Source: Bugula neritina (taxonomy: Eukaryota; Animalia; Bryozoa). Taken from it: a stretch of DNA of 64,000 bases. Numbering within the stretch: the stretch's first letter is position 1; the number at the start of each line of letters is the position of its first letter. The DNA lies in the NCBI GenBank assembly GCA_964035545.1, contig OZ037771.1:14445133-14509132 (forward strand), given 5' to 3'. Below the pieces are notes generated by a model that was not told the origin of the DNA, ran no database searches, and worked only from the letters and a program-made list of their open reading frames with translations. Positions 3,975-60,401 of this stretch are shown here, in pieces. The translations under genes were made by a program, and so were the position numbers.

Positions 3975-5710
3975 TGGTCGAAATGGATTCGCTAACTTGG
4001 TGTAACAACATAATGGATTCACTAGTTTTGTGTAGCTTGTTGCACAAAAGATAATTCTTAGATAATTTCTCTATTTGAAATATCATTCAGTTAGTATTTC
4101 TTATAAACATTTTCTGGTAATATCCATTCCATTATCAGTAGAAACTCAAATTCTCACCAAATCTCATTCTTTTATTTTCATTCGCTATTCTATTGCGGAA
4201 TATAGTTTTATTTTGTAGATAATTTTTAAATTTGAGAATATCTATATTTTTAACACGCTTGTAAATAATATTTTCATATATTGCTAATATTTTCTCTACA
4301 AAACAAATCATAGCTTTTACTACAAGCTTGTAGAATTAGTGTACATACTTTGTTTTGATAATGATGAATAAATATATGGGAGAATCTCAAAAGAATAATA
4401 GCACATCTTTTCAATTTTTCTCTAAAAAGTGACACCATTTAAATAAAAGCATTACTTTTATAAAAGCAACCTGTATTAGTTTAATTAAATCAGTTTATTT
4501 AACATATTTATAGTTACTCAAGTTGTTGGAACATTTCTTCACTAATGTTTTATGAAACTATCCTTCCGGAACATTTTTATAGCACCAGTATAGAAGTTAC
4601 ATAACTACTGATACACAGGAGAAGTTTGTTGATAAGCTAAACCCACTGACGCACAATTCTGGGAATGACAATATGGTTATCAGTGAAAGCAGCCATTACT
4701 GTTCCATTGCATTATAGGCAGAACTTTGCTCATCACTGAAACAATAGATTCACGCATGCTGGCTGTGATATGCCTGACGCTGTTACCATCACTAGTAAAT
4801 TTTTTTTTCATATCTAATAAATATAATATTATACATATTAAAACTCATTACTAGAATAATGATCTTATGCAAGAAGTCAAAAGTGGTTTTGTGAATGTAT
4901 ATTTTAATAAATAGATTCAGTTTTTTTAAAACAGTGACACAGCTTTAATATTGTGGGCATAAAAGACTTTAACTTAATAGTTGTTTCTATAACATCTATT
5001 ATACTAAGATGATATATATATAAATATATTATACAAGCAGCGTATGATATTATACCAGTATAAAATACATTGTACAACCATAGCATTTAATATCATGTAC
5101 AAACAAAACATATATTATGCTGAGATGACGTATATTATACAGGCAACATATGGTGTTATACTAGCAGGAAATGCATTGTACAAACATAATGTGCATTATG
5201 CAAATATAAAATATATCAAACAAACAAAGCATATATTTGCGAATAGACAACTTTTCAACAATTAATTCCAGAACTATAATTAGAAGGTTTAAATAATAAT
5301 TAATTACAATAAATGCCAATGAACAATATATCTGTCATTCTAGTCTACAATTTTAAAGTTTCGTTCAGAAGATTTATAGAAAAAAAATTCTAAAGCAGTC
5401 TGCGTGTTCTACACTTAACATGTTCTACACTTTACATGTTCTACAGCTTAGATGCTCTACAGTTAAGATGGTTTACAGTCTACGTGTTCTATAGTTAAAG
5501 GAAGGTGAAATTTAGGGACAAATTCATTAGTCAACAGCACATCATGCATGGCATACGATTTTATCTCAAAGTTTGTCAGATATCTGAGAAGCGTGGAAAA
5601 CTTCAGATGTTTTAGACTAAGTTTTTATTCTCACAAAATAGAAAGGGAGTGTTATCTAAGAAGACGGTATTTACCTTTGTAAACTCTTAAGAGAACCTCA
5701 ACTAAGTGAG

Positions 5711-5762
5711 TATAAAAGGAGTGGACAGAGACTCTAAGCTTCACTCTTGTAGTCGGAATAGA
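5711..5762 (+). promoter_or_regulatory. TATA box, initiator and short non-coding exon 1 of precursor gene 1
   Basis: TATAAAA at 5711, TCACTC initiator about 30 nt downstream, donor GTAAGT at 5763. Same arrangement in genes 2 and 3. Confidence 0.8.
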
Positions 5763-5969
5763 GTAAGTATATTACTGTCTTATATTCATACACTACTCTA
5801 CTCTAGACAGTGTTTTACTGTTCTGTGATATTACTATTATATCTTATAGCTTGAATTAAAAGATTTTTACTTATTATAATTTATGTGATCTAAGACAATA
5901 AGTGTTTAAAGACTGCAAAGTTTTTCACTCTAACACTTTAGTATTTGTTGACAGGAAAACAACTGAACC

Positions 5970-8494
5970 ATGAAGGTTGCCGTAGTCATCCTCGCTGTTG
6001 CAATTGTTGGAGCATTTGCTCAAGACACCACCACCCCTTCTGGGCCACCACCATTCGTGTGCACCAGCAGCAACTCCTTTGTCTGCACAGTAAGTAACTC
6101 CACAAACAATTTATTTTTACATGTAGTTAGTTTAGATTGTTGAGGAACTATTATTAAAATTACTAATCAAAATTGCATGTTTTGAAACTTAAAACATGAA
6201 ACATGTAACATACATTAGATAAACGTTTTATTATATAAATATTAAATCGTGCAAACATTATAGTATTTCATTATAGTATAATACTAATGTACAGTTTTAT
6301 TTTCACGTCAACAGCGTAAATAAAAACGTTTTCAACTAATAAATGCTCTTCTACTCATTTTCCTCAAGTATATGTATAAGTAAAGTTAACAAATCACACT
6401 TTCCTGTTGAAAGTTACTGATGTATGTATCTCTTTTTAGACTTAGCCGATTCAATTTAGTTTTGTTTATAGAAAATGTTTGTAGTATGTTATTTATTATA
6501 AAAACAATTACACAAAATTGTAGTTCCAGAAACTGGGACATAGCATCAAGTATCACGCTAAAAAATTGGGATCAAAACTTTCTGATGTGGGCGGCTCTAT
6601 CTTAGGCGCCACCATCGATCAAGGAAAGAACCTTTTGGCCAACGGTGCCCAAGGCAAGTACATGCATAGACTAGTATATATAAATTGTGCATAAAACGCA
6701 AGTATACTTGGACATCAATGCAAGAATAATTTTACTGTCAATTTTCACTTTCTGAAGTCGCAACACCATGACAGCTGCATCTCGCTGACTTTGATTGGTA
6801 AACTTATTACACTTCTCTTGCTAGCTGTTCTTTCTATTAACATTCAGTTTATTTTATTAGCTGTGCTTGGAACTGTTCTGGAACATCTCAACAAGGAAGG
6901 TCTTGTAGGAAAGAGAGAACAAAGCTCTTTCCTCAGCAAAGTTAGAGACCACGTCAAGAATGGCTTTGACAAGCTCAAACAGGTGAAACTTAATGACACT
7001 TTTGCAGTCTATAACAGCAAAATTATTCTGATTACTTTAAATTTGTAATTTTATGACAATGGTTTTAAATGAACCGCCCAAAGCGTACAAATTAACCGTT
7101 TACTCGTTGCAGATCAAAGAAGGTCTACACACAGCCTTCAAGAATGCCGTTGACAAGCTTCACAGCAAATTGGTCGATGTTGCAGCACTCAAGAACATTG
7201 ATGACGATGCTGACAAAGCAGTTGATGATGCCGTAGGTCAGTCGGTTTGTCAAGCGTAATGAGCAAATTAAGATATTTTGTTCTTGTTAAGAAAGACAAC
7301 TCTAACATCAAATAATTTTGCAGATGAGTTCAACAAGGAAGGTAACAAAGGAAGATTCGCCATGGCCAAGGCTATTGCTGGTAAAATCAGGGATATCTTC
7401 AAAGCTGGTATGGACAAACTGAGAGAGAGATTCGGTAAGAAGGTTGAGGAGAGAGCTATCTTTGGATTCGACTCTCTTTCTGATGCCTGGGAGAAAGCTA
7501 AGGGACATTTGAGCAACCTCGGTGGTGCCATTGCTGATACCTTCAAGCCTCATATCGATTCTCTCAAACAGGTATGCCTTCTTAATTTTAATTTAAATTC
7601 ATTGTTGCTTTTCAAAAAGAGCAGTCGGTGCGTTGATTTTCTTTTGAGTTAAAGAGCTTTCTTGATAACCAAATGCCAATTTTTGAATTCAGTAAAAATT
7701 TTTTAAAATTTGATCAAACTAGCACATCACTAATAAAAATACACACTCACTTTGATTGATTTCAGGGTGTTAGTGCACTCGGAGACCAAGTCAAGGCTCA
7801 TGCTGGAAACATTGCTGGAAAACTTAAAGAATCATTCGATGGTCTGAAGGGCAAACTGTCTGGACACATTGACACCCTCAAAGGTCACGCTGCCACTCTT
7901 GGATCCCACGCTACCAACGCACTCAAAGCTCTTGGAGAGGCTGTCGCTGGCATCACCCGTAAGTGCAGACACCTTGAACTCTACTCTGAGTAGAGATGTT
8001 AGGTTTATAAAAGTTGCTTTACTTTTCACCTAAACTACTTTCTCACTACCTCAAAACTTTAATGAAAACTGTTGTCCTATACCTGGTGACTTACATCTTA
8101 GCTTGTGATTTACTTATTAGCTAGTAACTTACCTATTAGTTAGTGACTTATAATTTATTAGTTAGTTACTTAATTATTAGCTAGTAACTTATATAATTTA
8201 TTGGTTATTTACTTACATATTAGTTAACTACTCACATATTATTTATTAATTTGCCTAATAGCCAGTGACTTACCTATTAGCTAGTGATTTACCCATCAGC
8301 TACTCAGTCAGCTGTACTTACTTCTTCAGTTATTTGTGAACAAGTTGAAATATAATCATTATTCTGTTGAATATTTGTTTTATACAGAGCAAGTGGCTAG
8401 CAACATCTCTGGAACCGCCAGCGATGCAGTCAAGACCGTAGTTGATGCTGCCGGAGTTGTCAGCAACCACGTCGGAGATGCTGTTGCAAACTAA
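5970..8494 (+). CDS. Secreted amphipathic-helix multi-peptide precursor, gene 1 (347 aa)
   Basis: Coding exons 5970-6089, 6524-6653 (GC donor), 6861-6982, 7113-7236, 7324-7571, 7766-7958, 8388-8494 give 1044 nt with no internal stop. Signal peptide MKVAVVILAVAIVGAFA, C-x7-C pair, GKR and GKK-VEER sites, AATAAA at 8544. Exon sizes are shared with genes 2 and 3. Confidence 0.92.
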
Positions 8495-10095
8495 ATCTAA
8501 AATTATCAAATTTTTGTGAACATCTTAAGTATTGAGATCTGACAATAAAATATTCCTATAACATAAAGTATACCTTCAACTTACTAACTTATTTATTCTT
8601 TTGCCTATTGTATTATTGAGTATAATATAGTAAGTAGCAACTTAAAGACTTCAACAACTCTCTCTATAAAGCTATATTCAGCACATTGTGGGAAAGGCTT
8701 ATAATACAAGATATTTTTTCATAAACACTAAAATTAAAGTTTGCCAAACACTGCTAAGCTTTTAGGTGTGTCAAATATTCAAAACACACCCCCAGCATGG
8801 TATTTTTATAATATAAATATGCTCATAAGAAATGTCTTGCTATATTCAATATCTAGTAGTTTAAGGAATCACTCAAGCAAAGATACAAATAAGAATAGAT
8901 TATACAATGGAATTCCTGTGTTTTATAGAGTGGGATCCTAGCAAATTCATTAATTAACCTTTATTTGGGGTTGGTTTGACAGGCAGCTAGGTGACTAAAT
9001 TCTCATTTTGTAATGCTAAGCAAACTGTTGCAGTAACCATTAATTAGTATCAGCAGGTTAATAAAAATGATGACCCACTAAAATAATTAGACTAACTCAA
9101 GAACCGCAGCTACAATCAACTAGTTTTATAAAAGTCATAATAATATTATATGAATAATTAATGCAACACTAATCTATGTAAAACTAATTTGTTTCCCCAA
9201 TCTTAATTCTTGTAAGACAGTTAGCCAATCACATGAGGTTACCTTGCAGCTAATCTACTAAATACTATAAGCCATATCACATTACAGAAATAGGTTATTA
9301 TCACATAATGTATTGCTCTATATATATTACAGAAAACAATATTGGATGTTTGGTGCTATAGTTGCAAGCTTCAAGCTTTACTAGAGTTCTTAAAATCCCA
9401 CACAGCTCTGCTGCAAGCATGTGACAACACCATAAGTCACACCCACCACGAATAGCAAGAGCAATGAAGTCTAAGGAAATAAAATGAAATAAAATATATA
9501 AGTTTTATTCAGTCATTAGATGTAAAATTTCCAAAAAGATATTTATACTATACATAGAATACCCTTACTACAGTATAGATGCAAATACTTGTAGGTATAC
9601 ATATAATATAAGGATAACAAAAACATGAACATAAATACAATGCACATAAATACAATCTAAAGATACATAAAGAACACATGCTACAAATATGGATGCCTTA
9701 TAATATAAAAAATAGATGCATGTGTAATAAAGAACCAAAATATCTGTTATATGAAAACCAGATTTTGTTACTGACAGTTGTGAGCAATCCAACAATGAGC
9801 AAATAACTTCTAACATAATCAAACTGCCTCAATTTTTGTCATAGTATTATTTGGCATTAATTTATAGCTTTAGCTAAAAGCAGTGTTCTAACTGCATACA
9901 TTATTATTTAAAAAGCCAACGCTCCACTAATATCAAAGCAATTGCTCTAATTTTTACAACTATTCCTCTAACTTGAACACAGGTTTTTTAAACAACAGTC
10001 AGTCACATGACAGTCACATGTCAGTCACATGACAGTCACGTGATATTAGTAGTAGTTTTAGTTTTGTTACTGGCCAGTTTTAGCAACATTACATA

Positions 10096-10851
10096 CACAG
10101 GATAGTTAAGGGCATCCTCACTAAGAATATCATAAATTTCTCTCAAAATGTAGTTCAGGTTCTTGAATAATATTGCTCTGCGGGTGGCATGCGTGTTGCC
10201 TACTTGTAAATGTTTAGCCTAAGATTAAACTACAACCAATAAGCAGCAACCTTCGTTAGGGCTGCGTAATCTATCAACATTCCATTATGGGTGCTACATA
10301 AACAAAGTACAAAGCGAGCTATTCATTATAGCCTGCCAGCTAGCTAGCCTGTAATTATTATGTAGGCGCCAATATCTTCTCATCCCTACGTGCTCAGTGA
10401 AGCGTGAAGTGCTGCGCGCTGCTAGTTTCTTATGAGAAAATATGGCATTTTCAGTGTATAAATCACCAATTTATGAGCAATCTAGCAGAGTTATTGAAAA
10501 AAGAAAAAAAGTTACACTGGAGAAATATCTCAGGATTCCAGCAGTGCAATTTTTATTCAGATATCATGCTTTGCTGCTGAGATATTTTACTGGTACTGAA
10601 AAGTCAGCTTTTCAGGCAAAATTGGCCAAAATTCGGCAGTTTTTTGTCTATAACTTCGCAAAAAAAATGAAAATTGAAATTTCCAAAAAACTTACACTGG
10701 AGAATAAGAAGATCTACAACATAGTTTTTAAATTTTGACTCTAGCACAATTAGGTGAGATTTTATTTTACTGGTACTGAATTCTTATATGATTACAATGC
10801 AAACCTCAGCAAGGCAGTTGCAGCTAAAAGGTTGCCCTTAACTATCCTGTG
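10096..10851. mobile_element. 756-bp non-autonomous Tc1/mariner-type MITE
   Basis: Perfect 19-bp TIRs CACAGGATAGTTAAGGGCA / TGCCCTTAACTATCCTGTG and TA target duplication. The empty site CATTACA-TA-ACTATGGCAG is present in the duplicate at about 16711-16730. Confidence 0.9.
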
Positions 10852-11573
10852 TAACTTTGGCAGCTGAGCTCTGCTAAATAAGTCTAGTTTAAACTTTTGT
10901 ACCATCTTGATAGGGTCAACTTTGGTGATGCAGCACCAACTTGTCTAACATGAACACCTATCTGCTGCAAATCAAACTGTAAGAGAGAGGTTGAAAACTA
11001 GGCCATATACGAGCACCTTATGTGAACAGAATAGTTTTATGTTATGTACTAAGTGTGCTTTTAGCTGCTCTTGCATTGTTCAAGTTGTACTATAACTTTC
11101 AACACCATAATGATATCTTTTGATGCTTTAAATGGAATGTTGATTATTGTTTCTTTTTAAAGCAGTTTTTTTTCAGGACTACTTTCTATAGGCTTATAGC
11201 AATATGATTTTTGTAGAATATTGTTGCAATGTAATATTTTATCACTGCAAGGAGAAATCAAGCATAGCTGAAAGCTTTTGCTTTCCCGTTTGGGAGCCGA
11301 ACCCGTTGATATATAACCCCAAAGCTGTTTATACAACTCTAAGGTTACATATAATATTATTATACCTTTAAGGCCACCTATATACTTCCAAGGTTGCATA
11401 ATGTACATATACCTTAAAACCCACATCATAGCGCTAAAGATAAATATATATTACATATAATACAACTGCAAATCATTTTGTAACTCATTTGTTACCTGTA
11501 TAACTTTCAGATAAACAGAGCCCTGGTTTAATTTTATACTGGCGTATTGTGGATAAGGTAGTTAACTCAACAG

Positions 11574-11737
11574 CACTGCGTTTCCATTATCGCATTATGC
11601 GAATGGATTTTTTCATTCGGCTAATGGAAACAGTTACATCGGATGAAACCGCAACTATAAGGTAATGCAAACCACAAACCACAAATAATCCGTACGAAGC
11701 ATTCATTCGCATTATGCGCAGTCATGGAAACGCACTG
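11574..11737. mobile_element. 164-bp PIF/Harbinger-type MITE
   Basis: Imperfect ~35-bp TIRs (CACTGCGTTTCCAT... / ...ATGGAAACGCACTG) and 3-bp CAG target duplication. Empty site CTCAA-CAG-GTGT at about 17464-17475. Confidence 0.85.
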
Positions 11738-12289
11738 CAGGTGTCTGTGACTTTTGTAAAGGAAGTGTCTTTTGGCATCAATATTGCTTGACTTAAGTGC
11801 TGACAGATATGATAGCAGTAGTGTGGTTGACTATTACATACAACTGTGCTAAGTAATACTAAACCATTGATATCAATTGAGTTGCCAAAAGCAATTCACT
11901 TCGGTGAAGTCATTTTAACAGTGCAAATGTTCTACCGATTACAAAAGAAATTTCAATTTCAATAGTCATTTTGATTGAGACTTTTTGTTTCATAAAATTT
12001 GTTTCTATACTTCAAGTATTAAACACAGTAAAATGAAGATAATAGATCACGTGGAATAGACACATGGCAAGCTAAAACGTTGTCCTTATTTGCGTCAATC
12101 TACAGATAACCGACTGAGAGAAACTGCAGATGGCGTAGCGATGTTCCTGTGCTGCTAGGGGCCGGATACTAACTGTTGTTGAGTTACATAGACAGGTGCA
12201 ACATTCACATAGCCTAGAAGGTAAAGGGTGGTGACTGAAAAGACCCCATATGTTTTGACAGACTCCTGATAGAACCTCAACTAAGAGAG

Positions 12290-12341
12290 TATAAAAGGAG
12301 TGGACAGGGACTCTAAGCTTCACTCTTGTAGTCGGAATAAA
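12290..12341 (+). promoter_or_regulatory. TATA box, initiator and non-coding exon 1 of precursor gene 2
   Basis: TATAAAA at 12290, TCACTC initiator, donor GTAAGT at 12342. Confidence 0.8.
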
Positions 12342-12548
12342 GTAAGTACATCACTGTCTTATATTCATACACTACTCTACTCTAGGCAGTGTTTTACTGT
12401 TCTGTAGTATAACTATTATATCTTATAGATTGATTAAAGGATTTTTTACTCATCATAATTTGTGGGATCTAAGACAATAAGTGTTTGAAGACTGCAAGGT
12501 TTTTCACCTTAACAGTTTAGTATTTGTTGGCAGGAAAACAACTGAACC

Positions 12549-14963
12549 ATGAAGGTTGCCGTAGTCATCCTCGCTGTTGCTATTGTTGGAGCTTTTGCTC
12601 AGGAATCTGCAGATTCTGGAGTACCAGAATTCGTGTGCACCAGCAGTAACTCTTTTGTCTGCACAGTAAGTAACTCTACAAGCAATTTATCTTTACATAT
12701 ATATTATTTAGTTTAGTTTAGTTTAGGTTGTTGAGGAACCAACATTCAAATTACTAATCAAAATTGCAAGTTTTAAAGCCTAAAATTTGAAACACGTAAC
12801 ATACATTAGATAATCTTTTTATCATATAAATATTAAATCATGCAAACATTATAGTATTGTATTATAGTACAGTACCTACTAATGTACAGTTTTACTTTCA
12901 CATCAACAGAATAAATAAAAACGTTTTCAACTAGTAAATGCTCCTCTACTCATTTTCCTCAAGTAGGTTTAACAATTACAAAAAATTGTAGTTCCAGAAA
13001 CTGGGACATAGCATCAAGTATCACGCTAAAAAATTGGGATCAAAACTTTCTGATGTGGGCGGCTCCATCTTAGGCGCCACCATCGATCAAGGAAAGAACC
13101 TTTTGGCCAACGGTGCCCAAGGCAAGTACATGCATAAACTAGTAAATATAAATTGTGCATAAAAAGCAAGTATACTTGGACATCAATGCAAGAATAATTT
13201 TACTGTCAATATTCACTCTCTGAAGTCGTAACACCATGACAGCTGCATCTCACTGACCTTGATTGGTAAACTTATTACACTTCTCTTGCTAGCTATTCTT
13301 TCTATTAACATTCAGTTTATTTTATTAGCTGTGCTTGGAACCGTTCTGGAACATCTCAACAAGGAGGGTCTCGTAGGAAAGAGAGAACAAAGCTCTTTCC
13401 TCAGCAAAGTTAGAGACCATGTCAAGAATGGGTTTGACAAGCTCAAACAGGTGAAACTTAATGACACTTTTGCAGTCTATAACAGCAAAATTATTCTGAT
13501 GACTTTAAATTTGTAATTTGATGACAATGGCTTGAAATGAACCGCCCAAAGCGTACAAATTCACCGTTTACTCGTTGCAGATCAAAGAAGGTCTACACAC
13601 AGCCTTCAAGAACGCAGTTGACAGGCTCCACAGCAAATTGGTCGATGTTGCAGCACTCAAGAACATTGATGACGATGCTGACAAAGCAGTTGATGATGCC
13701 GTAGGTCAGTCAGTTTGTCAAGCATAATGAGCAAATTAAAATATTTTGTTCTTGTTAAGAAGGACAACTCTAACATCAAATAATTTTGCAGATGAGTTCA
13801 ACAAGGAAGGTAACAAAGGAAGATTCGCCATGGCCAAGGCTATTGCTGGTAAAATCAGGGATATCTTCAAGGCTGGTATGGATAAACTGAGAGAGAGATT
13901 CGGTAAGAAGGTTGAGGAGAGAGCTATCTTTGGATTCGACTCTCTTTCTGATGCCTGGGAGAAAGCTAAGGGACATTTGAGCAACCTCGGTGGTGCCATT
14001 GCTGATACCTTCAAGCCTCATATCGATTCTCTCAAACAGGTATGCCTTCTTAATTTTAATTTAAATTCATTGTTGCTTTTCAAAAAGAACAGTCGATGCG
14101 TTGATTTTCTTTTGAGTTAAAGAGCTTTCTTGATAACCAAATGCCAATTTTTGAATTCAGTAAATTTTTTTTAAAATTTGATCAAACTAGCACATCACTA
14201 ATAAAAATACACACTCATTTTGATTGATTTCAGGGTGTTAGTGCACTCGGAGACCAAGTCAAGGCTCATGCTGGAAACATTGCTGGAAAACTTAAAGAAT
14301 CATTCGATGGTCTGAAGGGCAAACTGTCTGGACACATTGACACCCTCAAAGGTCACGCTGCCACTCTTGGATCCCACGCTACCAACGCTCTCAAAGCTCT
14401 TGGAGAGGCTGTCGCTGGCATCACCCGTAAGTGCAGACACCTTGAATTCTACTCTGAGTAGAGATGTTAGGTTTATAAAAGTTGCTTTACTTTTCACCTA
14501 AACTACTTTCTCACTACCTCAAAACTTTAATGAAAACTGTTGTCCTATACCTGGTGACTTACATCTTAGCTTGTGATTTACTTATTAGCTAGTAACTTAC
14601 CTATTAAGTTAGTGACTTATAATTCATTAGTTAGTTACTTAATTATTAGCTAGTAACTTATATAATTTATTGGTTATTTACTTACATATTAGTTAACTAC
14701 TCACATATTATTTATTGATTTGCCTAATAGCCAGTGACTTACCTATTAGCTAGTGATTTACCCATCAGCTACTCAGTCAGCTGTACTTACTTCTTCAGTT
14801 ATTTGTGAACAAGTTGAAATATAATCATTATTCTGTTGAATATTTGTTTTATACAGAGCAAGTGGCTAGCAACATCTCTGGAACCGCCAGCGATGCCGTC
14901 AAGACCGTAGTTGATGCTGCCGGAGTTGTCAGCAACCACGTCGGAGATGCTGTCGCAAACTAA
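12549..14963 (+). CDS. Secreted amphipathic-helix multi-peptide precursor, gene 2 (346 aa, chimeric)
   Basis: Coding exons 12549-12665, 12992-13121 (GC donor), 13329-13450, 13581-13704, 13792-14039, 14234-14426, 14857-14963 give an intact 1041-nt frame. N-terminus resembles gene 3; the remainder resembles gene 1. Confidence 0.92.
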
Positions 14964-17900
14964 ATCTAAAATTATCAAATTTTTGTGAACATCTTAAGTA
15001 TTGAGATCTGACAATAAAATATTCCTATAACATAAAGTATACCTTCAAGTTGTTATCTTATTGATTCTTTTGCCTATTGTATTATTGAGTATAATATAGT
15101 AAGTAGCAACTTAAAGACTTCAACAACTCTCTCTATAAAGCTATATTCAGCACATTGTGGGAAAGGCTTATAATACAAGATATTTTTTCATAAACACTAA
15201 AATTAAAGTTTGCCAAACACTGCTAAGCTTTTAGGTGTATCAAATATTCAAAACACACCCCCAGCATGGTATTTTTATAATATAAATATGCTCATAAGAA
15301 AATATGTCTTGCTATATTCAACATCTAGTAGTTTAAGGAATCACTCAAGCAAAGATAGAAATAAGAATAGATTATACAACGGAATCCCTGTGTTTTATAG
15401 AGTGGGATCTTAGCAAACTCATTAATTAACCTTTATTTGGGGTTTGAGAGACAGCTACCGGAGGTGACTAAGCTCTCATTTTGTAATGCTAAGCAAACTG
15501 TTGATGACAAACCAAAATAATTAGACTAACTCAAGAACAGCTACAATGAGTTGCTTGTGTTGATAGCATACCTTTAAAAATTTTCCTATTAGCTATAAGC
15601 TATGTTTTGTTTTACATTTTCTTTCACAATATTTCTAGAAAAAGCTTTTACCAAGCATTGCCAGTGTAAATCTGTTTTTTCCAAGATATATGTTTCACAA
15701 ATTTAAAAATACTTGTTTATTATAGACCAATAAACTAATTTTATAAAAGTCATATAAGTAGATGAATAATTAATGCAACGCTAATCTATGTAAAACTAAT
15801 TTGTTTCCCAATCTTAATGCTTGAAGGGCAATTCGCCAATCACATGAAGTTACCTTGCAGCTAATCTACTAAATACTATAAGCTATATCACATTCCAGAG
15901 ATAGGACTAGAGGTTATTATGACATAATGCATTGCTCTGTAAATATTACAGAAAAATTTTTGGATGTTTGGTGCTATAGTTGCAAGCTTCAAGCTTTACT
16001 AGAGTTCTTAAAATCATGTGACAGCACTATGAGTCACACCCATCACAAATAGCAAGAGCAATGAAGTCTAAGAAAATAAAATAAAATTAAATATAAAAGT
16101 TTTATACAGTCATCATATGTAAAATTTCCAAAAAGATATTCATACTACATAGAATATCCTTACAACAGTATAGATGCAAATACTTGTAGGTATTATACAT
16201 ATAATATAAGGATAACAAAAACATGAACATAAATACAATGCACATAAATACAATCTAAAGATACAAAAGGAACACATATACTACAAATATGGATGCATTA
16301 TAATATAAAAAATAGATGCATGTGTAATAAAGAATCAAAATATCTGTTATATGAAAACTAGATTTTGTTACTGACAGTTGTGAGCAATCCAACAATGAGC
16401 AAATAACTCCTAACATATTCAAACTGCCTCAATTATTGTCGTAGTATTATTTGGCATTAATTTATAGCTTTAGCTAAAAGCAGTGTTCTAACTGCATACA
16501 TTATTATTTAAAAAGCCACCGCTCCACTAATATCAAAGCAATTGCTCTACTTTTTACAACTATTCCTCTAACTTGAACACAGGTTTTTTAAACAACACTC
16601 AGTCACATGACAGTCACATGACAGTTACATGACAGTCACATGACAGTCACGTGACAGTCACGTGATATTAGTAGTAGTTTTAGTTTTGTTACTGGCCACA
16701 GTTGCAGCAACATTACATAACTATGGCAGCTGAGCTCTGCTAAATAAGTCTAGTGTATTTCTCTCTGTAATAGAACACTCTTGTACCATCTTGAGAGGTT
16801 TAACTTTGGTGATGCAGCACTAACTTGTCTAACAGGAAACATGAACACCTATCTACTGTAAATCAAACTGTAAGAGAGAGGTTGAAAAGTAGGCCATATA
16901 GGAGCACCCTATGTGAACAGAATAGTTTTATGCTCATAAAGCTACTAATTAGTGTGCTTTTAGCTGTTTTTGCATTCTTCAAGTTGTACTATAACTTTCA
17001 ACACCGTAATGATATTTTTTGATGCTTTAAATGGAATGTTGATTATTCTTTCTTTATAAAACAGTTTTTTTCAGAAATACTTTCTATAGGCTTGTAGCAA
17101 ATATGATTTTTGCAAATTTTTGTTGCAATATAAAATCTTATCACTGCAAAGAGAAATCAAGCATAGCTGAAAGCTTTTGCTTTCCCATTTTTGGGAGCCG
17201 AACCCGTTGATATATAACCCCAAAGCTGCATATACAACTCTAAGGTTACATATATTATTATACCTTTAAGGCCACCTATATACTTTTAAAGTTGCATAAT
17301 ATACTTATACCTTCAAACCCACATCATAGCACTAAAGATAAATATATATTACATATAATACAATTGCAAACCATTTTGTAACTCATTTGTTACCTGTATA
17401 ATTTTCAGATAAACAGAGCCCTGGTTTGATTTTATACTGGTGTATTGTAGATAAGGTAGTTAACTCAACAGGTGTAGTGACTTTTGTAAATTATGTGTCT
17501 TTTGGCATCAATATTGCCTGACTTAAGTGCTGACAGATATAATAGCAGTAGTGTGGTTGACTATTACATACAACTGTGCTAAGTAATACTAAACCATTAA
17601 TATCAGTTGAGTTGCAAAAAGCAATTTACCTCGGTGAAGTAATTTTAACAGAGAAAGTGTCATGACAGTCAATTTGATTGCTTCTTTTTTGTTTCATAAA
17701 ACTTGTTTCTATACTTCAATTATTACACACAGTAAAATGAAGGTAATAGATCACGTGGAATAGACACATGGCAAGCTTAAACGTTGTCCTTATTTGCGTC
17801 AATCTACAGATAACTGACTGAGAGAAACTGCAGATGGCGTAGCGATGTTCTTGTGCTGCTAGAGACCGGATGCTAACTGTTGTTGAGTTACACAGACAGG

Positions 17901-17992
17901 TGCAACATTCACATAGCCTAGAAGGTAAAGGGTGGTGACTGAAGAGACCCCATATGTTTGACAGATTCCTTATAGAACCTCAACTAATAGAG

Positions 17993-18044
17993 TATAAAAG
18001 GAGTGGACAGGGACTCTAAGCTTCACTCTTGTAGTCGGAATAAA
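17993..18044 (+). promoter_or_regulatory. TATA box, initiator and non-coding exon 1 of precursor gene 3
   Basis: TATAAAA at 17993, TCACTC initiator, donor GTAAGT at 18045. Confidence 0.8.
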
Positions 18045-18251
18045 GTAAGTACATTACTGTCTTATATTCATACACTACTCTACTCTAGGCAGTGTTTTAC
18101 TGTTCTGTAGTATAACTATTATATCTTATAGCTTGATTAAAGGATTTTTTACTCATCATAATTTGTGTGATCTAAGACAATAAGTGTTTGAAGACTGCAA
18201 AGTTTTTCACCCTAACAGTTTAGTATTTGTTGACAGGAAAACAACTGAACC

Positions 18252-20463
18252 ATGAAGGTTGCCGTAGTCATCCTCGCTGTCGCTATTGTTGGAGCTTTTG
18301 CTCAGGAATCTGCAGATTCTGGAGTACCAGATTTCGTGTGCACCAGCAGTAACGCCTTTGTGTGCAAGGTTTGTTATATTTGCATATTTTCATTCTCTAG
18401 TCCTTCAATCACAGAAGTGTTCAGTAGAATTAAAAATTCTTAAGTTTGTTGATTATTGTTGAAATAATTTCATCAAGCTTCATTAAATTTATCATGATGC
18501 TATATACTAGACACCTTTGAAACAATGACCTTTACAAAATATTTGCTTTAAATGAACAGTTGCAAGAAGTTGGACACCACATCAAGTACCATGCTACAAA
18601 GCTAGGAAGTCAACTTGGGAAAGTTGGAAGTGCTGTTTTGGGAAGTGCTATTGACCAAGGAAAAACTCTTTTGGCCAACGGGGCTCAAGGTGAGTAAAAC
18701 CATTTAAACAAATAAAATAAAGCTAATTTCACAAGGAGGAAATAAACCATGTTTTAATAATCAGCACTAATTAATGTGCAATTTAAATGTGAAGTATATA
18801 AATAATTAGGCTACAATATGAAAGGCATTACAAGTGTGTAGTAGTATATAAAGTGAAACAGATTAAACAATAGAAGTTGTATTCATGTCACAAGGTTTAA
18901 TTATAACAACATGATGCAACTGCCATATACATTGGTACTTTATAAACAAAGTTGACTAGAAAATTTATAATTTATTCGGTTTTACTAAATAGAATCAATC
19001 AATTCAATTCACAACATGCTATATGTTCGGTTTTATTATTTATATTTTAGCTGTGCTTGGAACCGTTCTGGAACATCTCAACAAGGAGGGTCTTGTAGGA
19101 AAGAGAGAAGAAAGCTCTTTCCTCAGCAAAGTTAAAGAGCACCTTCAAGCTGGATCGGGTCTACTTAATAAGGTAAACAAAGTCACATGACCACATAAAG
19201 TCACATGACCGCTATTATGTCAAGTTGCTTGCTTTTAACTTTGAAGAGACTCATATTATAATTAACAATTTCTAACAGAAAAAGTTCGCTTGCAAATTTA
19301 TGGAGTTATTTCATAAATTTCGCATATTGTTAGATCAAAGAAGATCTTCACGCTGCATTCAAGAAAGCAGCCCAACAAATTACCGGCAAGATCGCTGACT
19401 TGTCAGCACTCAAGAAAGTTGATCAGGATGCTGTCAAGGAGATCGACGCTGCCATTGGTATGTAACCTCTTGATTCCTTACTAATAGCCATCACGTAAAG
19501 ATGATTCAAACGACATCAAGTTTTCAAATATTCTTGACATTGGGAGCAATGGAAAGATATTTGCTAAGAATTTATTACTCCAACATTAAATAAAAAAGTA
19601 TATTGATCTTGTAAAGAGTGAACGACTCTAACATCAAATAATTTTGCAGATGAGTTCAACAAGAAAGGTAACAAAGGAAGATACGCCATGGCTAAGGCTA
19701 TTACTGGTAAAATCAGGGATATTTTCGAGGCTGGTATGGACAAACTGAGAGAGAGATTCGGTAAGAAGGTTGAGGAGAGAGCTATCTTTGGATTCGACTC
19801 TCTTTCTGATGCCTTTGAGAAAGCTAAGGGACATTTGAGCAACCTCGGTGGTGCCATTGCTGATACCTTCAAGCCTCATATCGATTCTCTCAAGCAGGTG
19901 CGTGGTCAGATACAAGCAATGAATTTATGCATAACACTGTAAGCTGGTGACTCAGCTGTAAAGGCTACCACTACTATACCGTAGCAAAGTTGCAAACATG
20001 TTAAAAAAAACTTTTTGCTATGACATTGTTCAAAACTTTTGTGTGGAAGGTATTAGAGCATCAACTAAATAGAATAACATCATTTTCAAACTGAAACTTA
20101 CAGGGAATTGCATCTCTTGGAGATCAAGCCAAAACCCACGCTGGAAACCTTGTTAACGCTGCAAAGGATTCTTTCAATGACCTCAAAACAAAGCTTGCTG
20201 GTCATGTCGACACCCTTAAAGGTCATGCTGCCACTCTCGGAACTCACGCTACCGATGCCCTCAACGCCTTGAAGGCAGCCGTTTCTGGCATCGCGAGTAA
20301 GTCCCGAGACGTTCTCTGAACAGATCATTACAAACCTTTCTTGAATTTTGATATCAAATATCTTATAATTATTCAACTCGGCTAATTTTGTTTTTTAGGG
20401 GAAGTTGCCAGTAACGTTGCCGATACCGTTAAAGATGCTGTCAGCGATGTTGTCTCCAACTAA
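18252..20463 (+). CDS. Secreted amphipathic-helix multi-peptide precursor, gene 3 (332 aa)
   Basis: Coding exons 18252-18368, 18560-18689, 19051-19172, 19334-19457, 19650-19897, 20104-20296, 20399-20463 give 999 nt. All introns GT-AG, same phases as genes 1 and 2, AATAAA at 20529. Confidence 0.92.
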
Positions 20464-23400
20464 CTTAGTCATGCTGCCAAGTTATGAAAAAACATTATTT
20501 ATGTAACAACAGAGATATCTAATTTACCAATAAAACATACGAATATCTCAACAGTGTGTTTGTTGCTTTTAATGATCTGTAGCTTTTGTAGCATAATCTA
20601 TAGCTCAATGATTGAATATTGTTAAGAGCGCAGTGATTGCATAATATAATCTAGTAAAGGAAGTGATGCCAGTAGATCGCTTCAAAAATGAAAATTAAAT
20701 GATATAAAATGGTAGTTAATGTAAACAAAGTCAAGCTTTAAAAAATCATTTGTTCCTAAAAAACTAATGTTTTGCAGAAACGCAACAATAAGCATGCGTC
20801 TTCACCTTTTATTAAAATGAGAAATCTTCTTAAGCACAAAATATGAAAACAGGATGTCATAAGAAAGCATAGCATTGTCTCTAAATAGAATGCAGATATC
20901 AATTTATTGAAGTAGCTATTTAGCTTTGAAAATATTCATGTCTCTATTTCTTTACATCATTTGTCATCTTCTATCCCTATTGTACAAAACCTGTTGCAAC
21001 ACAAAATGTCTGTAAATTATAAATATGATAATCAGCGCAGCAATGTATGTTAGAAATATCTTTCATAGTGCAATCAGATTATCTTCAAATTTGATTATTT
21101 TTAATAAAATTGTATATTATGTGTCATTCTTTCAATATTTGGAAATGAAATGTTTTTGCAGCGACTTTTGTTGAAGTATTGAAACAAATTTTAATTAATA
21201 TAGTTGAAACACTTGTCTAAAGTAAGTCTAAAATCATACTTGATACTTTTAGTATTATAATAATTCATTAAATTATAACATGAATAAAATAAAATAATTA
21301 TGTTAAACACTTTGTCACGATTTTCTTATTTATTATAAAGATAAAATTAAACTGAGAAAACATTAATTTTAGCCATTTATACATTTAAAAAAATTAAAAG
21401 AATTGTAGCATGTTCAAATGTTAAAGGAGATAATATAACACAAAAGATAGTTTAAAATCATATATCAATAATGAAGTATGACATGATAATATAACATATT
21501 ATAATATAACAACAATATAACGTATTGCACTATATAACGTTGTATAAGAAAAAATAAAATATTGTAACAATATGAGGTAAAAGATTATAAAAATATAATT
21601 CATAATAAAATAAAACATAGCCCAACAATATATTACAATAAAATAACATAACACCGCAATATAACATAAAGTATTTTAAGCCTGGTATTTTATTTAAAAA
21701 GCATTAAAAGCACCAAATATAATTCTAATAAAAACTTTGCATGAATGAATGCTCTTACAGTTGTGGGTTTAGAAACATACAACTCAATGTATATTTTAGC
21801 ATTATTTAATAATACATAATATTGCTTAAAATTGTTAGGCATCAAGAGTTACTAAGCCTTAACTGAGAGAGTAGCATAACAAGTGTGTAGTCACAAAAAT
21901 AATGTTAACTGCAAAGAAGCCTAAAGGTATTTTGAAAAAGTCTAAAGTAGTGTGAAGGGGTTAAAGGGGTGTGCCAAGGACCGTATATATAGCAATCAAG
22001 TGTTTCAAAGGGGTATTAAATCAGTGGATACAGGTAAACGTGGTGCAAAGGAATACAAAGTGGCATAAAGGAAAACAAAAAGTTACAAAAAAATGAAGAA
22101 GTACAAATATATTGTATAGGACTATTAAGTTTTATTATCAAACTACAATTGTTGAAACTTTACATAAGCTGGGAAAGCTTTCCTTAATGCATGATAGCTT
22201 TTCACATATCATCACAGCTATGCCAGCTATAATGTGCTTTTTCCACATTCATTATGGCTACTACACAAAAGGTAGTAACGGTTTTTGACTAGTATAAGAA
22301 CCCAGCATTTTTCACTTATCCACACACTTGCGTCTCACTCTTGCAACTTGCAACTTATGATATAACCTTTTTCACATTGCCATTTTTTTCAGCCTGCTAC
22401 AATAAATATTTTTATACACTTAAAACACAATTTACGCCTTTTAAAAAATAAATCAGTTTTTTGAAAAACAGAAATTCGTATAATGAATATCTATAACGGT
22501 TTACTTCTACCAATAGCTCTAGTGGCTTTAACAGAGTACCATGAGAATAGCTGCAGCAGGTTGTTTACGTTACATAATATCCTGCAACTAGCCTTAAAAT
22601 AGAACGGAAAGGGAAGATAGTAAAGTATTTATCAGTGACTACATTCAGTGAACAACCATATGTTAATCTATGATAACAAAAAGGTAGCAACAACACATCA
22701 ATATAGTGTAGAATATTGTAGAGCAATATAGAACATATTATTCCTAAAGAGCATTCTTTAACACTATAAAACAGTGAAAAACATCATAGAAAATTATAGA
22801 ACAAGATATAACAATATAGACCAATAATAAAAACTATAAAATGCTTTAGAACAGCATAGACAACTATAGAAAAATGTAGACCGTTATAAAGTACTATAGA
22901 ATAATCTAGAACAGCATAGAACAGTTTATAGATAACTCTTATGCAATCATAAAAGTTCTAATCATGTTTAAAATCTGTAAAAGATCTATTCTATCATACA
23001 TTTGTTTTTTAAGTTAATTTCCCTCCTCGAAAGTTTGCTTTCACCAACTTTCAGAAGAAAGTTAATGGATGGTTTAGTTGACAAAAATGTTATAGTGTCA
23101 CATTACTATCATATGTGGCTTGGGACAGGCTGCTTGGGTTTAGCAAGCATTGACGTCATCATATTATATGGCCATACATAGCGTGACAGGAAATCTGACG
23201 ATTCCCATAGCCCTCAGCTAGTGTGAGCCTACTATACTAGCAACTTAAGCAAACAATTCTAATCAACTAATTTAGTTACACAATTTACAAAAATAAAATT
23301 TCTCACATGTATCAAAAGCTGATTACGTGACATACTTTCAAAAAACCACAGTTGAAAGTTGCCTTTAGTGCCGATAACCCAAGGTTTGCTGGTTGAATTT

Positions 23401-23507
23401 AAAGTTGTAACATTTCTTTTTGATAATGTATATTTAATTTTGGCAATATTAGAAACAGTTAGTAGAAAGTTCAGTTTGATTTAATTATGTTTTTATTTTT
23501 ATTGTAG

Positions 23508-26500
23508 ATGAAGGTGTTAGGGACTTTGCTAGTTGTGGTAGTCTTGTTTAACGTGTGTCATGGTGGAACACTCACTGACAAGTTTAAAGAAATTGGAGAC
23601 AACCTTAAACAGACTGGAACCGAAATAAAGAATAAACTGACGGGCATTACTCAATCTCTGGGAATTGTTGCTAAAAGCAAACTAAAAAGCTTGGCTTCAC
23701 AGAGTTTACAGGGTTAGTATGTCCTTCGTACATTGTACTGCTTCAATTTCTTTCATTGTATGTATATCTGTATGATGAATTTGTAGTTGCAGTTTGCGTT
23801 AAGTTATGATTGTGGTAGTTTCATTCAATGCAATTGTCTCCAAATACCAAAAGAAAAATCTATTGCATAATTCCAGCAGTGAAAACAGGTGTTATATTGT
23901 ATTTGATTTAGACCTCATTTCATTTCCGTTATTTTCCACTCTTGACGAGTTATTGAAACTTGCATATGTGTATATACTGTATTAACAAGAATGTAGCATT
24001 ATTGAAGTATACAGTTCATTTCAAATTTAGCCCCGTTGTGTAATTCTAACTGTTGTTTGAAAAATTGAGTTTGCATTGTTGCACTTGATTACGTTCTGCT
24101 AACAACAGATTTGATGTAGAATTTAGATCAAACTTTCTTATTTTTAAGTAATTATCAAGCAGCAGCAGCAATATCCTAATTATATCTATATGAACTACTT
24201 ATTGTTTAGTCAATATTAAAGTATATGACGTCAGTTGGTACTTTTTGGCAGCTTTGGCCGGTGCTGTTATAACTAGCTTCAAGGGGTTTGACCTTGGCGA
24301 AATACTATTTGGAAAGCGAGAGTTGGGTGCCGTACAGTACTTCAGGCAGCTGGTAAGTGTCAGTAACTACTATAAAATGCCAACAATCAACTGTAGGGTG
24401 TCAGCAATAAACAATCATAATAGATGACTATTTCTTTGCTATATGACAAATAGAGAAACACAATCATAATATGAAAATTTAAATCGAATGGACAGAATTA
24501 TCTTCTATCTATAAATTAAAGATTGGCATTTCTCTGAATTAATTTACTCTGTAAAGCTTGTAATATGCGTCTAATGCAAATAATATAAGATCTAATTAAT
24601 CATGATATAATAAACTCCTACAGTGGAAAAGAGTTTAAGTTATCATTTTCAGGCAGCACAGGTGAAAGAGACTCTAGATAAAGTATTCAAGAAGACATTC
24701 GATAGATTCAGCAGCGTCATCAAGAGTTTGGGTCAGCAAAAATCCACGAAGCAGCTGCATTCTGAACTGGCAGAGATTGCTGGTAAGTTTAGTTATTGAT
24801 GTAAATGCAGTAGATGGAACAAGTTGTATAAAATATTTAAATTAATATATTCTTATTATATCTAATTATATCTAAATATAACGCATAAAATCTATCTAAA
24901 ATATCATAACTTAAAAGTAAAGTAAACAATCCAAATGATTATAAACTAAGAATCTAAAGCAGCGATTAAAAGGACTAATAGTTTTATATAATGCTATATT
25001 TCTGTCTTAGAACTGCATTGAAAACAAAAAATACTATACAATCTTTCCTTATAATAGTGCAATATTTGTAATATATTATATATGTAATGTATATAGCATT
25101 CAATATACGTAATGTGTATACTATATAATATATATAATATTTATAATATAATATAATATGATATACATGTTATGTAATATGTATAGTACACAAGATATGC
25201 AATATATGTATATTATAGATCATATATTATATGTAATATGTATAATATAATATAATATACTATATACATATACATATTATGTAATATGTGTAGTACATAG
25301 GATATGTAACATGTATAATATTATGTAACTGCAGTTTTAAGTTGTGTCGCACACTATTATGTTTTAATACAACACTGCTTGGCCAATTAGAGTAAACAAG
25401 TTTACTTTACAGGCCAGGCTTTACTTAGCAAAGTTTAGCAGACTACAGGTATACCTGTAAGCAAGGTGTGTTTGTAGCCTTCTAGAAATGGAGGTAACTT
25501 TGATAACTGAATCTTTGTCACATTTGACAACGATATGCTAATTAGTCTTAGCAGCTTATTTCAAAATATGATTCATCACTTTGACTATATCTCAAAGTAT
25601 ATGCTTGTATTTAAACATTAGTTTGTCTCATATTATGACTGTTGGTATGATAGTATAGTGGTATATATCTATTTCATTAAACTGTAATGCAACTCTCTCT
25701 ACTTGTTACAACAGATGACCATGAGCTGGCAGCAAGAAGCATTGTTGGAGATACCCTTAACACTGGAATAAACTTTATCAAGAATGCTTACCAGAAACTC
25801 AAGGTAAATTTCAGTAGATAAAAAGAAGTTAAATTTTCATCAAATCAACAATAAATATGTACTTTAAGCTATTAGTTAGTGGAGCCTGAAACAACCTCAC
25901 ATGCTAATTAATTTTAAGCCACAAAAACTAAAATTTAGCTGAATTTCTAATAAAACTTCCTTGAGCCTGGTTAAGGGCACTTCACAAGAACGTCTCTTCT
26001 CGTCAACTACTTGATAGTTCCACAGCCAACTTATCTTACGTTTGCTTAGAGCATGTTACCGTTTAGACTGGTAAAGCATACTAGCAACTACAGCTTTCTA
26101 ATCAGAATAAAAGCTAATTTAATATAAGTTCTCCAATATTCTTGTAGTTTGTTTGACACGTTGTAAAAGGAGTTGTATTACTTCTGTTGGAAATACCGTT
26201 AGCTATTTATAGCTTTGCAATGTTGATGACAGTCAATTACACATATTAGTAATTAATTTGCTGACTTTCTTCATTTTTGCATGCAGCCTGAACTTGCAAA
26301 ACTTGAAGCAATTTTTTATAATCATCTTAAGAGAAAAAAATGTTTTTATGTTTTCTTCTAGGACTTTCTTGGAAGTAAGACTAAAATAGCAGACCCTGTA
26401 ATGATCAGCAAAAGAGGTTTACTCACCGATGCCTGGGACAGTCTGATGGGCAGACTAAACACACTCAAAGAGCAGTTCCAGCCACACTATGCTAAGACCA

Positions 26501-27521
26501 GCGAAGTAAGAACTACTCTCTGGTTGCTATCAGTTATCAACAATCAAAACTACCTTTAGTTTATGACAAAATAAATATAATTCATGAAGGTTTCATTGAT
26601 GGAAAACACAGCTAAGTCTAGTATAAAGGTTTTAACTTCATTGCTGAAGAAATCTGTTGTTGTAGATCACACAGAACGTGGCTGCAGCTCTGAAACACTA
26701 CGGAGGGAAGTTTCTAGAAGACGCCAAGGAAGGGGCAGCTGACAAGGTGACATAATAATGACTAATAATTTATTCTAGTAATAGTCATAGTAGTCAGTTC
26801 TATTGAAATCTGGTGAACCTACTTTAGTAAAGTCACATCACGAAATTTTATAGGTCAAGTCTCGGGTGCATTTCATTACATAATCTCTTCAACTTGAGCA
26901 AACTTGAACTCACTATTAATTTAACATAAAGTTACTACTAGAAACCATATTCAGTAAATGTAACAGCCAATCACATTTTATTTTCATGGGGCATTAAAAC
27001 ACTTAAATAATATCATCGTACAAAACTATATTGTAATTATATGATAAAATAATATATAATCTATATTATGATAATATATTGCATATTATATTATTATTAT
27101 TTGACAGTGGAATTGCTGTTAAGTTAAAACTTGTATCTTATACTGAAAGAGAATTACTTTCTACCATGATGATTATACATTTATTCTACTCTTCCTTTCT
27201 AACATTTTTGAGTTTATAAATAAATACATATTTGTTAATTTGAGTTGCACTGTTTATATCTCAAGTGCCTTTAGGTAATATGCCTTTATATAATATATAT
27301 TGCTGTAACGTCATTAAACAAGAATGTTTTATTTTCATACCAACTTTCTGACAGACAGCTCTCCACGCTGCCTGTAAATTAGGTATGTCTTTTAGATGAA
27401 CCAAACCCTGGGATACCTGAAAGACCGTCTCCATGAGCACTTGGCTGATGCTAAAGATACGTTTATTTCCCTTAAAGACCACGTGACTGACGCAGTACAA
27501 GACTGGGTCTCCCCCAACTAA
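23508..27521 (+). CDS. Divergent member of the same precursor family, gene 4 (291 aa)
   Basis: Coding exons 23508-23712, 24252-24352, 24653-24782, 25715-25803, 26362-26505, 26666-26746, 27396-27521 give an open 876-nt frame. Signal peptide MKVLGTLLVVVVLFNVCHG, LFGKR and SKR-GLLTDAW...FQPH (compare DAW...FKPH in gene 1), and two shared phase-1 intron positions. Confidence 0.85.
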
Positions 27522-28727
27522 ATAATGTAAGCACCGATAAAATTTAAGCTACGCATCCTAATTGATAAAATTTTCGATAGAAATCCGAACTAAGAGTTCT
27601 TAAAATTTTATAACTCCAACATTTTAATGCAGATTTCATCTTTTAAAATGTCTTACATATTGTGTCAAAGTTCGATTTGCGTCATTATAAAGTCTGAAGA
27701 CCATTTATTTCAACAACTTTAACAATTCCTTAACGAAATAATTTTTCTGCTTTTAGGTCAAGAGTTGAATCTAAGTACGTCAAGATGTAACACAATTAAA
27801 ACTTCAATTAGATATTTGAGGAGGAATAAATAATTATCTTTGCTGGAGTTTGCAAAATCTAAATGCAAATAAATACAAAGATTTGATAAAAGCTAATGTC
27901 ATTTTCATATTATATTTACTTTTTATAGAGGTCAACATATTACAGTTCATACGCATTTACGACCATAAATAGTAGGATAATTCTAACATTTAAATATCAT
28001 AAACTATGCAATAGCATCAATAACAATGAAGTTTGATTCACATTTGCAATATTATAGACACGTAACTTATAGTTATAAAAGGAGTGGTTTGACAACCAAT
28101 AAAATGAAAATTCCGGGTTAAATATCTTTAAGAAATAAAAGAAGTTTATAGATATCAAAACACTATTGCATAGTGATTGCTGCTGAATACAGCAAAAGGA
28201 ATCCCAGGCATTGTAAATTAAAGGAACACAATACTTATAATTTCCTAGTATTGAAAAAGTAGTAATTATTGGAATAAAAATGGTAGACATCAAAGAGAAT
28301 AATATAAAATAAAATATTGTCAGACAACCTGATTGGTGTTTATAAAACCATCAAATAAAGATTTAGTTAAAGCACCTTAAATGGAGATATATAGAACCAC
28401 AGAGTTATTATAGTGAGATAGCAAAATATCCAACACAAAGTTAGTTTGAAATAAACATAAGTTAAAAAGTTTGGTTTAAACTTGAGAAAATTGAAAGACT
28501 TGTGCGTAGTTCAATTTCGATACATTGCAACATTGAAATGGTAGAGTAGAAAGACTCGAGTGTTGAAAGCTATAAGAAAACAGAGAGCTAGGCCAGCCAA
28601 TACATTCAATATATCAAACATGTCAGCCAATGGGAATGAGAATACATGATCTGTACTGGTAGCTCCTGAGACAAGCTAAATAGCTATTGAACTAGTAATG
28701 AATGAACCAATAATATAGCAGGTAACA

Positions 28728-40083: not shown

Positions 40084-48398
<8,315 letters not shown>

Positions 48399-51343: not shown

Positions 51344-60401
<9,058 letters not shown>

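Follow-up and report, generated by a model that had tools for sequence, protein, structure and literature searches.

A bryozoan gene cluster for secreted precursors of amphipathic helical modules with conserved processing sites

The bryozoan Bugula neritina carries a cluster of four tandem genes, here called g1 to g4, each of which encodes a signal-peptide-like N-terminus followed by amphipathic helical modules separated by basic sites. The cluster lies in a 64,000-nucleotide stretch of genomic DNA that was analysed as a whole and is referred to as the window (assembly GCA_964035545.1, contig OZ037771.1, positions 14,445,133 to 14,509,132); positions given below are those of the window. A preliminary description had proposed that the genes yield a cocktail of membrane-active peptides for defence, with a lipid-binding protein as the main alternative. 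The analysis reviewed here identifies a secreted and expressed family that belongs to no named family, and whose current labels are either 'hypothetical' or misleading automatic names.

The gene cluster and its relatives

All four genes lie on the plus strand, and each has seven coding exons. The coding sequence of g1 (347 amino acids) is an open frame across 5970-6089, 6524-6653, 6861-6982, 7113-7236, 7324-7571, 7766-7958 and 8388-8494. That of g2 (346 amino acids) occupies 12549-12665, 12992-13121, 13329-13450, 13581-13704, 13792-14039, 14234-14426 and 14857-14963, and that of g3 (332 amino acids) 18252-18368, 18560-18689, 19051-19172, 19334-19457, 19650-19897, 20104-20296 and 20399-20463. 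The divergent g4 (291 amino acids) again has an open frame, across 23508-23712, 24252-24352, 24653-24782, 25715-25803, 26362-26505, 26666-26746 and 27396-27521. At the protein level g2 is 98% identical to g1, while the corresponding values are 72-74% for g3 and 26-30% for g4. A longer version of g4 exon 2, starting at 24210, was dropped: it is not conserved, and it is the acceptor at 24252 that the draft genome of B. neritina shares.

The analysis confirms all four genes as real and intact, as the preliminary description had read them from spliced open frames. RNA contigs from one run (X1) show g3 with each of its six coding introns spliced out and stop at 20541, just past its poly(A) signal, those from a second run (X2) cover the g3 exons and coding exon 1 of g4 without introns, and the g1 model is backed by full-length transcript homologues. 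The residues previously singled out in g1 are present, as are the GKR, AAR and SKR sites of g4. AATAAA signals at 8544, 15013 and 20529 lie 50-65 nucleotides past the stop codons of g1 to g3. Intron 2 of both g1 and g2 is of the GC-AG type (g1 donor at 6654), which is why public Bugula models retain part of it.

The promoter elements reported earlier for g1 to g3 were also found: the TATA element TATAAAAG occurs at 5711 (5711-5718 on the plus strand), 12290 and 17993, followed each time, 32 nucleotides downstream, by an initiator-like TCACTC (near 5743 in g1). A short non-coding exon of g1, ending at 5762 before a GT donor at 5763, is predicted. The claim that codon usage betrays high expression did not survive: the GC content of synonymous third positions is 0.43-0.48 in the cluster genes versus 0.50 in the neighbouring SLC22 gene, and NNC codons are not preferred over NNT (p=0.5). 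The promoter of g4 was not located. The stretch at 22150-22430 was considered for this role and dropped, as the RNA contigs there carry the unrelated flanks of a repeat. This short dispersed repeat, which occurs in RNA contigs of several runs, includes a TATA-like and an initiator-like stretch upstream of g4.

The nearest named proteins are the B. neritina hypothetical proteins EB796_016838-016841. The draft assembly has the matching gene order, with g4 followed by an MFS transporter, but its identity to the window across long stretches is only about 82-88%, and the window therefore probably derives from a sibling type within the B. neritina complex. Genes of the g1-3 type number four in the draft genome and three in the window. 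From intron 1 onwards the DNA of g1 and g2 is 97% identical, versus 87% in exon 1, and the draft orthologue of g3 bears a g1-like exon 1; for these reasons, we infer that unequal crossing-over or conversion shaped the 5' ends of g1 to g3. Could g1 and g2 simply be an assembly duplicate? The 87% identity of their 5' ends, their different spacers and the fact that an independent genome has four such copies annotated rule this out. As for g4, its score on the family hidden Markov model (HMM) is 78 bits, versus 10.7 for the best shuffled and 12.2 for the reversed sequence, and it shares three introns with g1 in the same column and phase; judged by these comparisons, it is a true distant homologue of g1 to g3.

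Genome searches for further paralogues returned none beyond the four cluster genes and a fifth gene at G000:C3:11206869-11209933, which encodes 310 amino acids with GKR, KR and GKR sites and has its own TATA box. Compared to its draft counterpart EB796_007172, the N-terminal half of this protein is far more diverged than the C-terminal half.

Beyond Bugula, a single-exon query matched an orthologue in Watersipora subatra, which carries the automatic NCBI name apolipoprotein A-I-like. Used as a query in turn, the Watersipora orthologue retrieved 31 full-length database relatives of 280-354 amino acids, which together with five genome models make a set of 36 full-length members extending down to about 30% identity. 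Database queries were single exons, database proteins or alignments, one of which had separate rows for P0038 and for two exons of the C3 paralogue; spliced models joined from their exons were used in local scripts only. In the tree, subfamilies A (with g1 to g3), B (with the C3 gene) and C each fall on one side of a well-supported branch, and g4 sits on a long branch. Named members come from Bugula and Watersipora only, the remainder being full-length environmental RNA transcripts. Those transcripts include red-algal samples (a Gracilaria set and a Laurencia run) and entries of MERC, a plankton catalogue, and their sources suggest that epiphytic colonies and larvae express the genes. A more distant branch, L066/L067 (JGI Ga0314713 contigs), came from a metagenome scan at 30-35% identity and 165-171 bits, and it retains GKR, KR and RR sites and the His-striped last module, its modules being acidic. 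The literature search found no description of the family, and a paper on the Bugulina zooid transcriptome does not mention it.

Conserved processing sites

The signal peptide of g1 (5970-6020, plus strand) is predicted by inspection to cover residues 1-17, ending A-F-A before Gln18, and all full-length homologues have a similarly hydrophobic N-terminus. Site 1 (6908-6916 in g1, 13376 in g2, 19098 in g3) reads GKR in 34/36 members, GRR and GNR occurring once each. The last site of g1 is a GKK followed by a VEER spacer (7434-7454, plus strand). Across the family this site is KR in 21/36 and (E/D/A)R in 15/36, so that a monobasic (E/D)R interchanges with KR, and nearly all of subfamily B has GKR here. 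In the 34 non-redundant sequences just four columns other than Met are invariant, namely Gly100 and Arg102 of site 1, Arg209 at the end of the last site, and Pro241.

The middle site is more variable. It is KR throughout subfamily B, AAR in g4 and absent in subfamily C, while in subfamily A it is KK followed by GF in 12/18 sequences, KS or KM in 3/18, and KGR in Bugula only. In g4 the three sites lie at 24311 (GKR), 25729 (AAR) and 26407 (SKR) on the plus strand, and the last module is shortened. The preliminary description had asked whether the cleavage sites would be conserved in homologues. For the first GKR and the last Arg they clearly are, but the KGR is Bugula-specific, and the Gly that would serve to amidate the third module is present in only 11/18 sequences of subfamily A.

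GKR is a well-established signal for convertase cutting, trimming of the basic residues and amidation, and the genome carries both convertase P-domain and copper monooxygenase genes. The basic sites that had been proposed to part the modules occur far above shuffled rates: subfamily A has 0.94 GKR per sequence compared to 0.06 after shuffling, and subfamily B 2.92 KR compared to 0.46. Even though Lys is ten times commoner than Arg in subfamily B, 79% of all its Arg lies within KR, and the last module is almost free of Arg. From one side of a site to the other the apolar face changes register by a variable amount, and the sites therefore do not lie within one continuous helix, as expected of linkers. 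Because three residues, the Gly and Arg of site 1 and the Arg preceding the last module, do not vary even at about 30% identity, cleavage of the precursor by convertases is very likely. The copper type II monooxygenases (DBH/MOXD/PAM-like) occupy at least a dozen loci on C3, C4, C5 and C9, several in tandem groups, a possible expansion in this genome.

These data bear directly on the view implied by the automatic NCBI name, that the Watersipora and Bugula proteins are ordinary, uncut apolipoprotein-like proteins in which basic pairs are incidental. In favour of this view, the sequence is rich in Lys (12%). It is difficult, however, to see how incidental pairs could stay invariant at 30% identity and exceed chance by up to 40-fold while Arg is nearly absent elsewhere, and the match of the family to the apolipoprotein Pfam model reaches only 33 bits where 90 are called for (see below). 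We regard this explanation as extremely improbable.

A second possibility is that the genes encode a hormone or granin-like precursor, the modules being signals or granule-packing chaperones of neuroendocrine cells. The KR and GKR usage does resemble that of predicted B. neritina neuropeptide precursors (PMC4990251), and the second module contains an acidic stretch. That in silico survey reported 11 precursors, with rare and fragmented transcripts (PMC4990251), and the present family is absent from among them; full-length assemblies of its transcripts are obtained even from environmental RNA of mixed origin. In addition, the modules are 28-140 amino acids long without a repeated short motif, and Pfam searches returned no neuropeptide match. 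This reading, too, seems most unlikely.

The helical modules and their probable targets

In g1 the sites delimit four modules on the plus strand. M1 (6021-6907; residues 18-99, 82 amino acids, 8.5 kDa) has a Cys31/Cys39 pair and a net charge of +2, and is predicted to be amidated. M2 (6917-7349; about 71 amino acids) combines a mildly cationic, amphipathic N-terminal part with an acidic C-terminal part (-6), and M3 (7350-7433; 26-28 amino acids in g1) is a cationic amphipathic helix of +4 or +5. The last module, M4 (7455-8491; 138 amino acids, 13.8 kDa), is near neutral. It is common to all branches, with mean identity of 62-73% within subfamilies, and has one conserved Pro and no Cys (Pro makes up 1% of residues). 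All modules are amphipathic, with mean hydrophobic moments of 0.32-0.46, and in every one of them Lys lies 60-150 degrees and Asp/Glu 150-180 degrees from the apolar face, the layout of class A helices. The hydrophobic period of M4 peaks at 98.5 degrees (3.65 residues, or 11/3; p<0.001 versus shuffles), heptad power being negligible, and near-invariant histidines spaced 11/7/7 run as a stripe along one edge of the apolar face. In subfamily B, M1 and M3 are similar, which may point to a duplication within the precursor.

How well does this layout fit a cocktail of membrane-active peptides? In the host-defence model, released helices would permeabilize the membranes of microbes or fouling organisms, M3 in the manner of a typical cationic peptide, and the His-rich modules once activated at low pH. 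The secreted multi-module precursor, the amphipathic helices, the conserved sites and the invariant amidation Gly all fit such a model, and the EER/DDR spacer appears similar to the processing motifs of spider and frog precursors. So does M3 of subfamily A, with 28-30 amino acids and a hydrophobic moment of up to 0.46-0.60, and 3/16 members match an aurein-like Pfam model, if below its cut-off (15.8 bits versus 20.6, best E 0.014). The tandem arrangement, in which copy number has changed and 5' exons have been exchanged, points the same way, as does the sessile life of an animal exposed to fouling.

The charges do not. Median net charges of M1 to M4 are -0.5, -2, +3 and -1.5 in subfamily A (M3 ranging from +1 to +5) and +0.5, +0.5, +1.5 and 0 in subfamily B, while modules of subfamily C are at about -1. 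The values for L066 are -2, -2, +1 and -6, and L066/L067 as a whole range from -6 to +2 without a clearly cationic module. Short and clearly cationic mature peptides, the hallmark of antimicrobial peptide (AMP) precursors, are thus found in M3 of subfamily A only, the other modules being 38-143 amino acids long with median charges of -2 to +1.5. Three of the four modules are neutral or acidic, a poor design in seawater salt. Moreover, both sites that flank M3 are only partly conserved in subfamily A, subfamily C lacks the M3 site, and searches of the M3 profiles against PDB matched no AMP, just as none was matched above a Pfam cut-off.

Nor is there a sign of an arms race. Between the two Bugula genomes, the ratio of nonsynonymous to synonymous substitution rates (dN/dS) lies at 0.0-0.2 in M3 and M4 of both g2 and g3, M2 of g2, and M1, M2 and M4 of g4, and at 0.46 in M2 of g3; no ratios were retained for M1 of g2 and g3 or M3 of g4, where the ungapped comparison is disrupted by indels in the draft genome. 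With such low ratios in most cleanly alignable modules, selection as estimated here is purifying and not diversifying. The parts of the earlier proposal that concern precursor structure thus stand, but a host-defence polyprotein as the primary function, though the chief rival to the lipid-surface model given below, is somewhat unlikely. One group within subfamily B (P0066-P0071) has a Trp- and Lys-rich N-terminal part of M2 with a net charge of +5 to +6. This makes it more similar to an AMP than its Bugula counterpart, possibly through a lineage-specific shift towards membrane activity.

The 11/3 period and the histidine stripe allow yet another explanation, since this period also defines right-handed coiled coils. 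The modules might be a secreted material or surfactant, stored soluble in acid granules and converted at seawater pH into hendecad coiled coils or films with His-metal cross-links, as in an adhesive, mucus or cuticle. The Ala/Gly/Leu/Lys-rich composition and the apparent abundance in RNA contigs agree with this. However, short amidated pieces are unusual for fibres, the Lys/Glu layout suits lipid surfaces, and no richness in Tyr/dihydroxyphenylalanine, Cys or phospho-Ser is seen, so that a structural role appears improbable.

Comparison with known families provides the remaining evidence. Exon-wise Pfam searches gave nothing above cut-off. The family member P0023 scores 33 bits with Apolipoprotein (PF01442; cut-off 90, best E 2.9e-8) and 21 bits with Apolipophorin-III (PF07464; cut-off 36.3, best member E 1.1e-6), while Perilipin (PF03036) gives 18.5 bits against a cut-off of 33 (best E 2e-4). 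Membership in the perilipins is ruled out by that score together with the signal-peptide-like N-termini. NCBIfam gave scattered bacterial matches, and Pfam no match to the nematode polyprotein allergens (NPAs). The absence of a named family, as had been suspected, is thus upheld: the proteins fall below the cut-off of every family compared, and no full-length match to a characterized family was found in Pfam and profile searches. As judged from these scores, the family is a member of none of the apolipoprotein, apolipophorin-III (apoLp-III), perilipin or AMP families.

The family does share features with several of them. Vertebrate apoA-I, apoA-IV and apoE and insect apoLp-III are likewise secreted, with class A helices, the 11/3 period of the PF01442 type and near-neutral charge, and M4 equals apoLp-III in size. 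The Bugula family differs in being a polyprotein with invariant convertase and amidation sites, in its His stripe and seven coding exons, and in lacking the tandem Pro-punctuated 22-mers of apolipoproteins, which were not found in M4. With the precursors of frog magainin, PGLa and CPF and spider latarcin and cupiennin it shares the signal peptide, GKR and acidic-X-X-R sites, amidation and tandem genes, and M3 of subfamily A is similar in size and charge to their products; unlike them, it has mostly long neutral modules, purifying selection, a non-cationic conserved core and no sequence match above cut-off. NPAs such as ABA-1 are also secreted polyproteins cut at basic sites into helical, lipid-binding units of about 14 kDa, and so provide a precedent for cleavage and lipid binding together. 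They repeat one disulfide-bonded unit with furin-type sites, whereas a Cys-bonded tandem unit of about 130 amino acids was not found here, the Bugula modules being unlike one another and carrying amidation signals. Perilipins, LEA proteins and synucleins share 11-mer amphipathic repeats, but perilipins and synucleins are cytosolic and uncut. By analogy, the family may work most like a hybrid of frog/spider precursor processing, the apoLp-III helix type and the cut-then-bind logic of NPAs.

We infer that the modules likely bind lipid surfaces. Class A helices of exchangeable apolipoproteins sit on lipid without net charge, M4 is both the best conserved module and the most apolipoprotein-like (its profile matches apoA-IV at E 4.7e-10 and apoA-I at 1e-4), and L066/L067 keep the sites and M4 without a clearly cationic module. 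The lipid binder earlier held as an alternative thus fits better than the peptide cocktail, and it is compatible with cleavage, not opposed to it. The fuller model, to which we would give an even chance, is a polyprotein of the regulated secretory pathway whose released helices coat the surfaces of lipid or other hydrophobic material, M4 serving as a carrier that binds reversibly and may be switched by its histidines. The signal peptide would be removed and the precursor packed into secretory granules, where prohormone convertases would cut at two places, the first GKR and the last (K/E/D)R, with one further cut at a middle site in most members. M1 would then be trimmed by carboxypeptidase and amidated by PAM, as the invariant sites and established chemistry lead one to expect. 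The products would be three or four helical modules, mostly zwitterionic, that could lie on lipid, with M4 forming a helical bundle of about 14 kDa that opens onto lipid in the manner of apoLp-III. The His stripe could confer dependence on metal or on pH, as between the acid granule and seawater or coelomic fluid. The likeliest role would be bulk binding, emulsifying and carrying of lipids or hydrophobic material in the colony and larva, and in subfamily A the cationic M3 may have a secondary antimicrobial activity. Since apoLp-III performs both lipid handling and defence, the two need not exclude each other.

Several observations weigh against this model. The M4 profile also matches designed bundles and phage tape-measure proteins, and its apolipoprotein matches therefore reflect periodicity rather than descent. 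An AlphaFold (AF2) model of M4 has five helices, as does apoLp-III, but at low confidence (pLDDT, the predicted local distance difference test, of 61; full-length model 33). Fold searches with M4 retrieved generic bundles (best Z 10.9), apoLp-III being absent among the top 50, and the top Foldseek match, a fungal fatty-acid-binding five-helix bundle, is not significant (E 0.06). Furthermore, amidation of the C-terminus is typically seen in bioactive peptides of granules and not in lipid carriers, and certain lytic and structural peptides also contain class A helices.

Vertebrates and insects are known to have exchangeable apolipoproteins, and our literature search found no account of them, or of helical defence peptides, from bryozoans. 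The architecture of the family has precedents, and its function is a prediction; what is new is the expanded cluster, the divergent g4 and a quantitative case against a purely cationic cocktail. The predicted products are exact enough for mass spectrometry and assay, with masses of 8.5, about 12 and 13.8 kDa and a cationic peptide of 3 kDa. Should such assays give a positive result, they would identify either the lipid carrier in a colony whose zooids share nutrients or, in an important fouling organism, a new source of membrane-active peptides. More speculatively, and with rather doubtful prospects, the genes may belong to a class of polyproteins, probably of wider lophotrochozoan distribution, that joins an apolipophorin-like lipid carrier, switched by pH or metal through its histidines, to amidated membrane-active helices; this would be a candidate exchangeable lipoprotein, transporting lipid from one bryozoan zooid to another and into larvae and doubling as surface defence.

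Neighbouring genes and repeats

Upstream of the cluster, 3' exons of another plus-strand gene lie at 1200-4000. On the other side, an SLC22/MFS-type transporter gene of at least 13 exons (28700-36700, minus strand) stands tail to tail with g4; this is the neighbour shared with the draft genome. Exons of a TMEM144-family transporter begin at about 40100 on the plus strand (Pfam E 4e-15), and exons of a GALNT-like glycosyltransferase (Glyco_transf_7C) lie at 55800-60400 on the same strand. A satellite with a 20-bp unit in about 168 copies occupies 43429-46795 and shows extreme GC skew, and the introns are filled with many other minisatellites.

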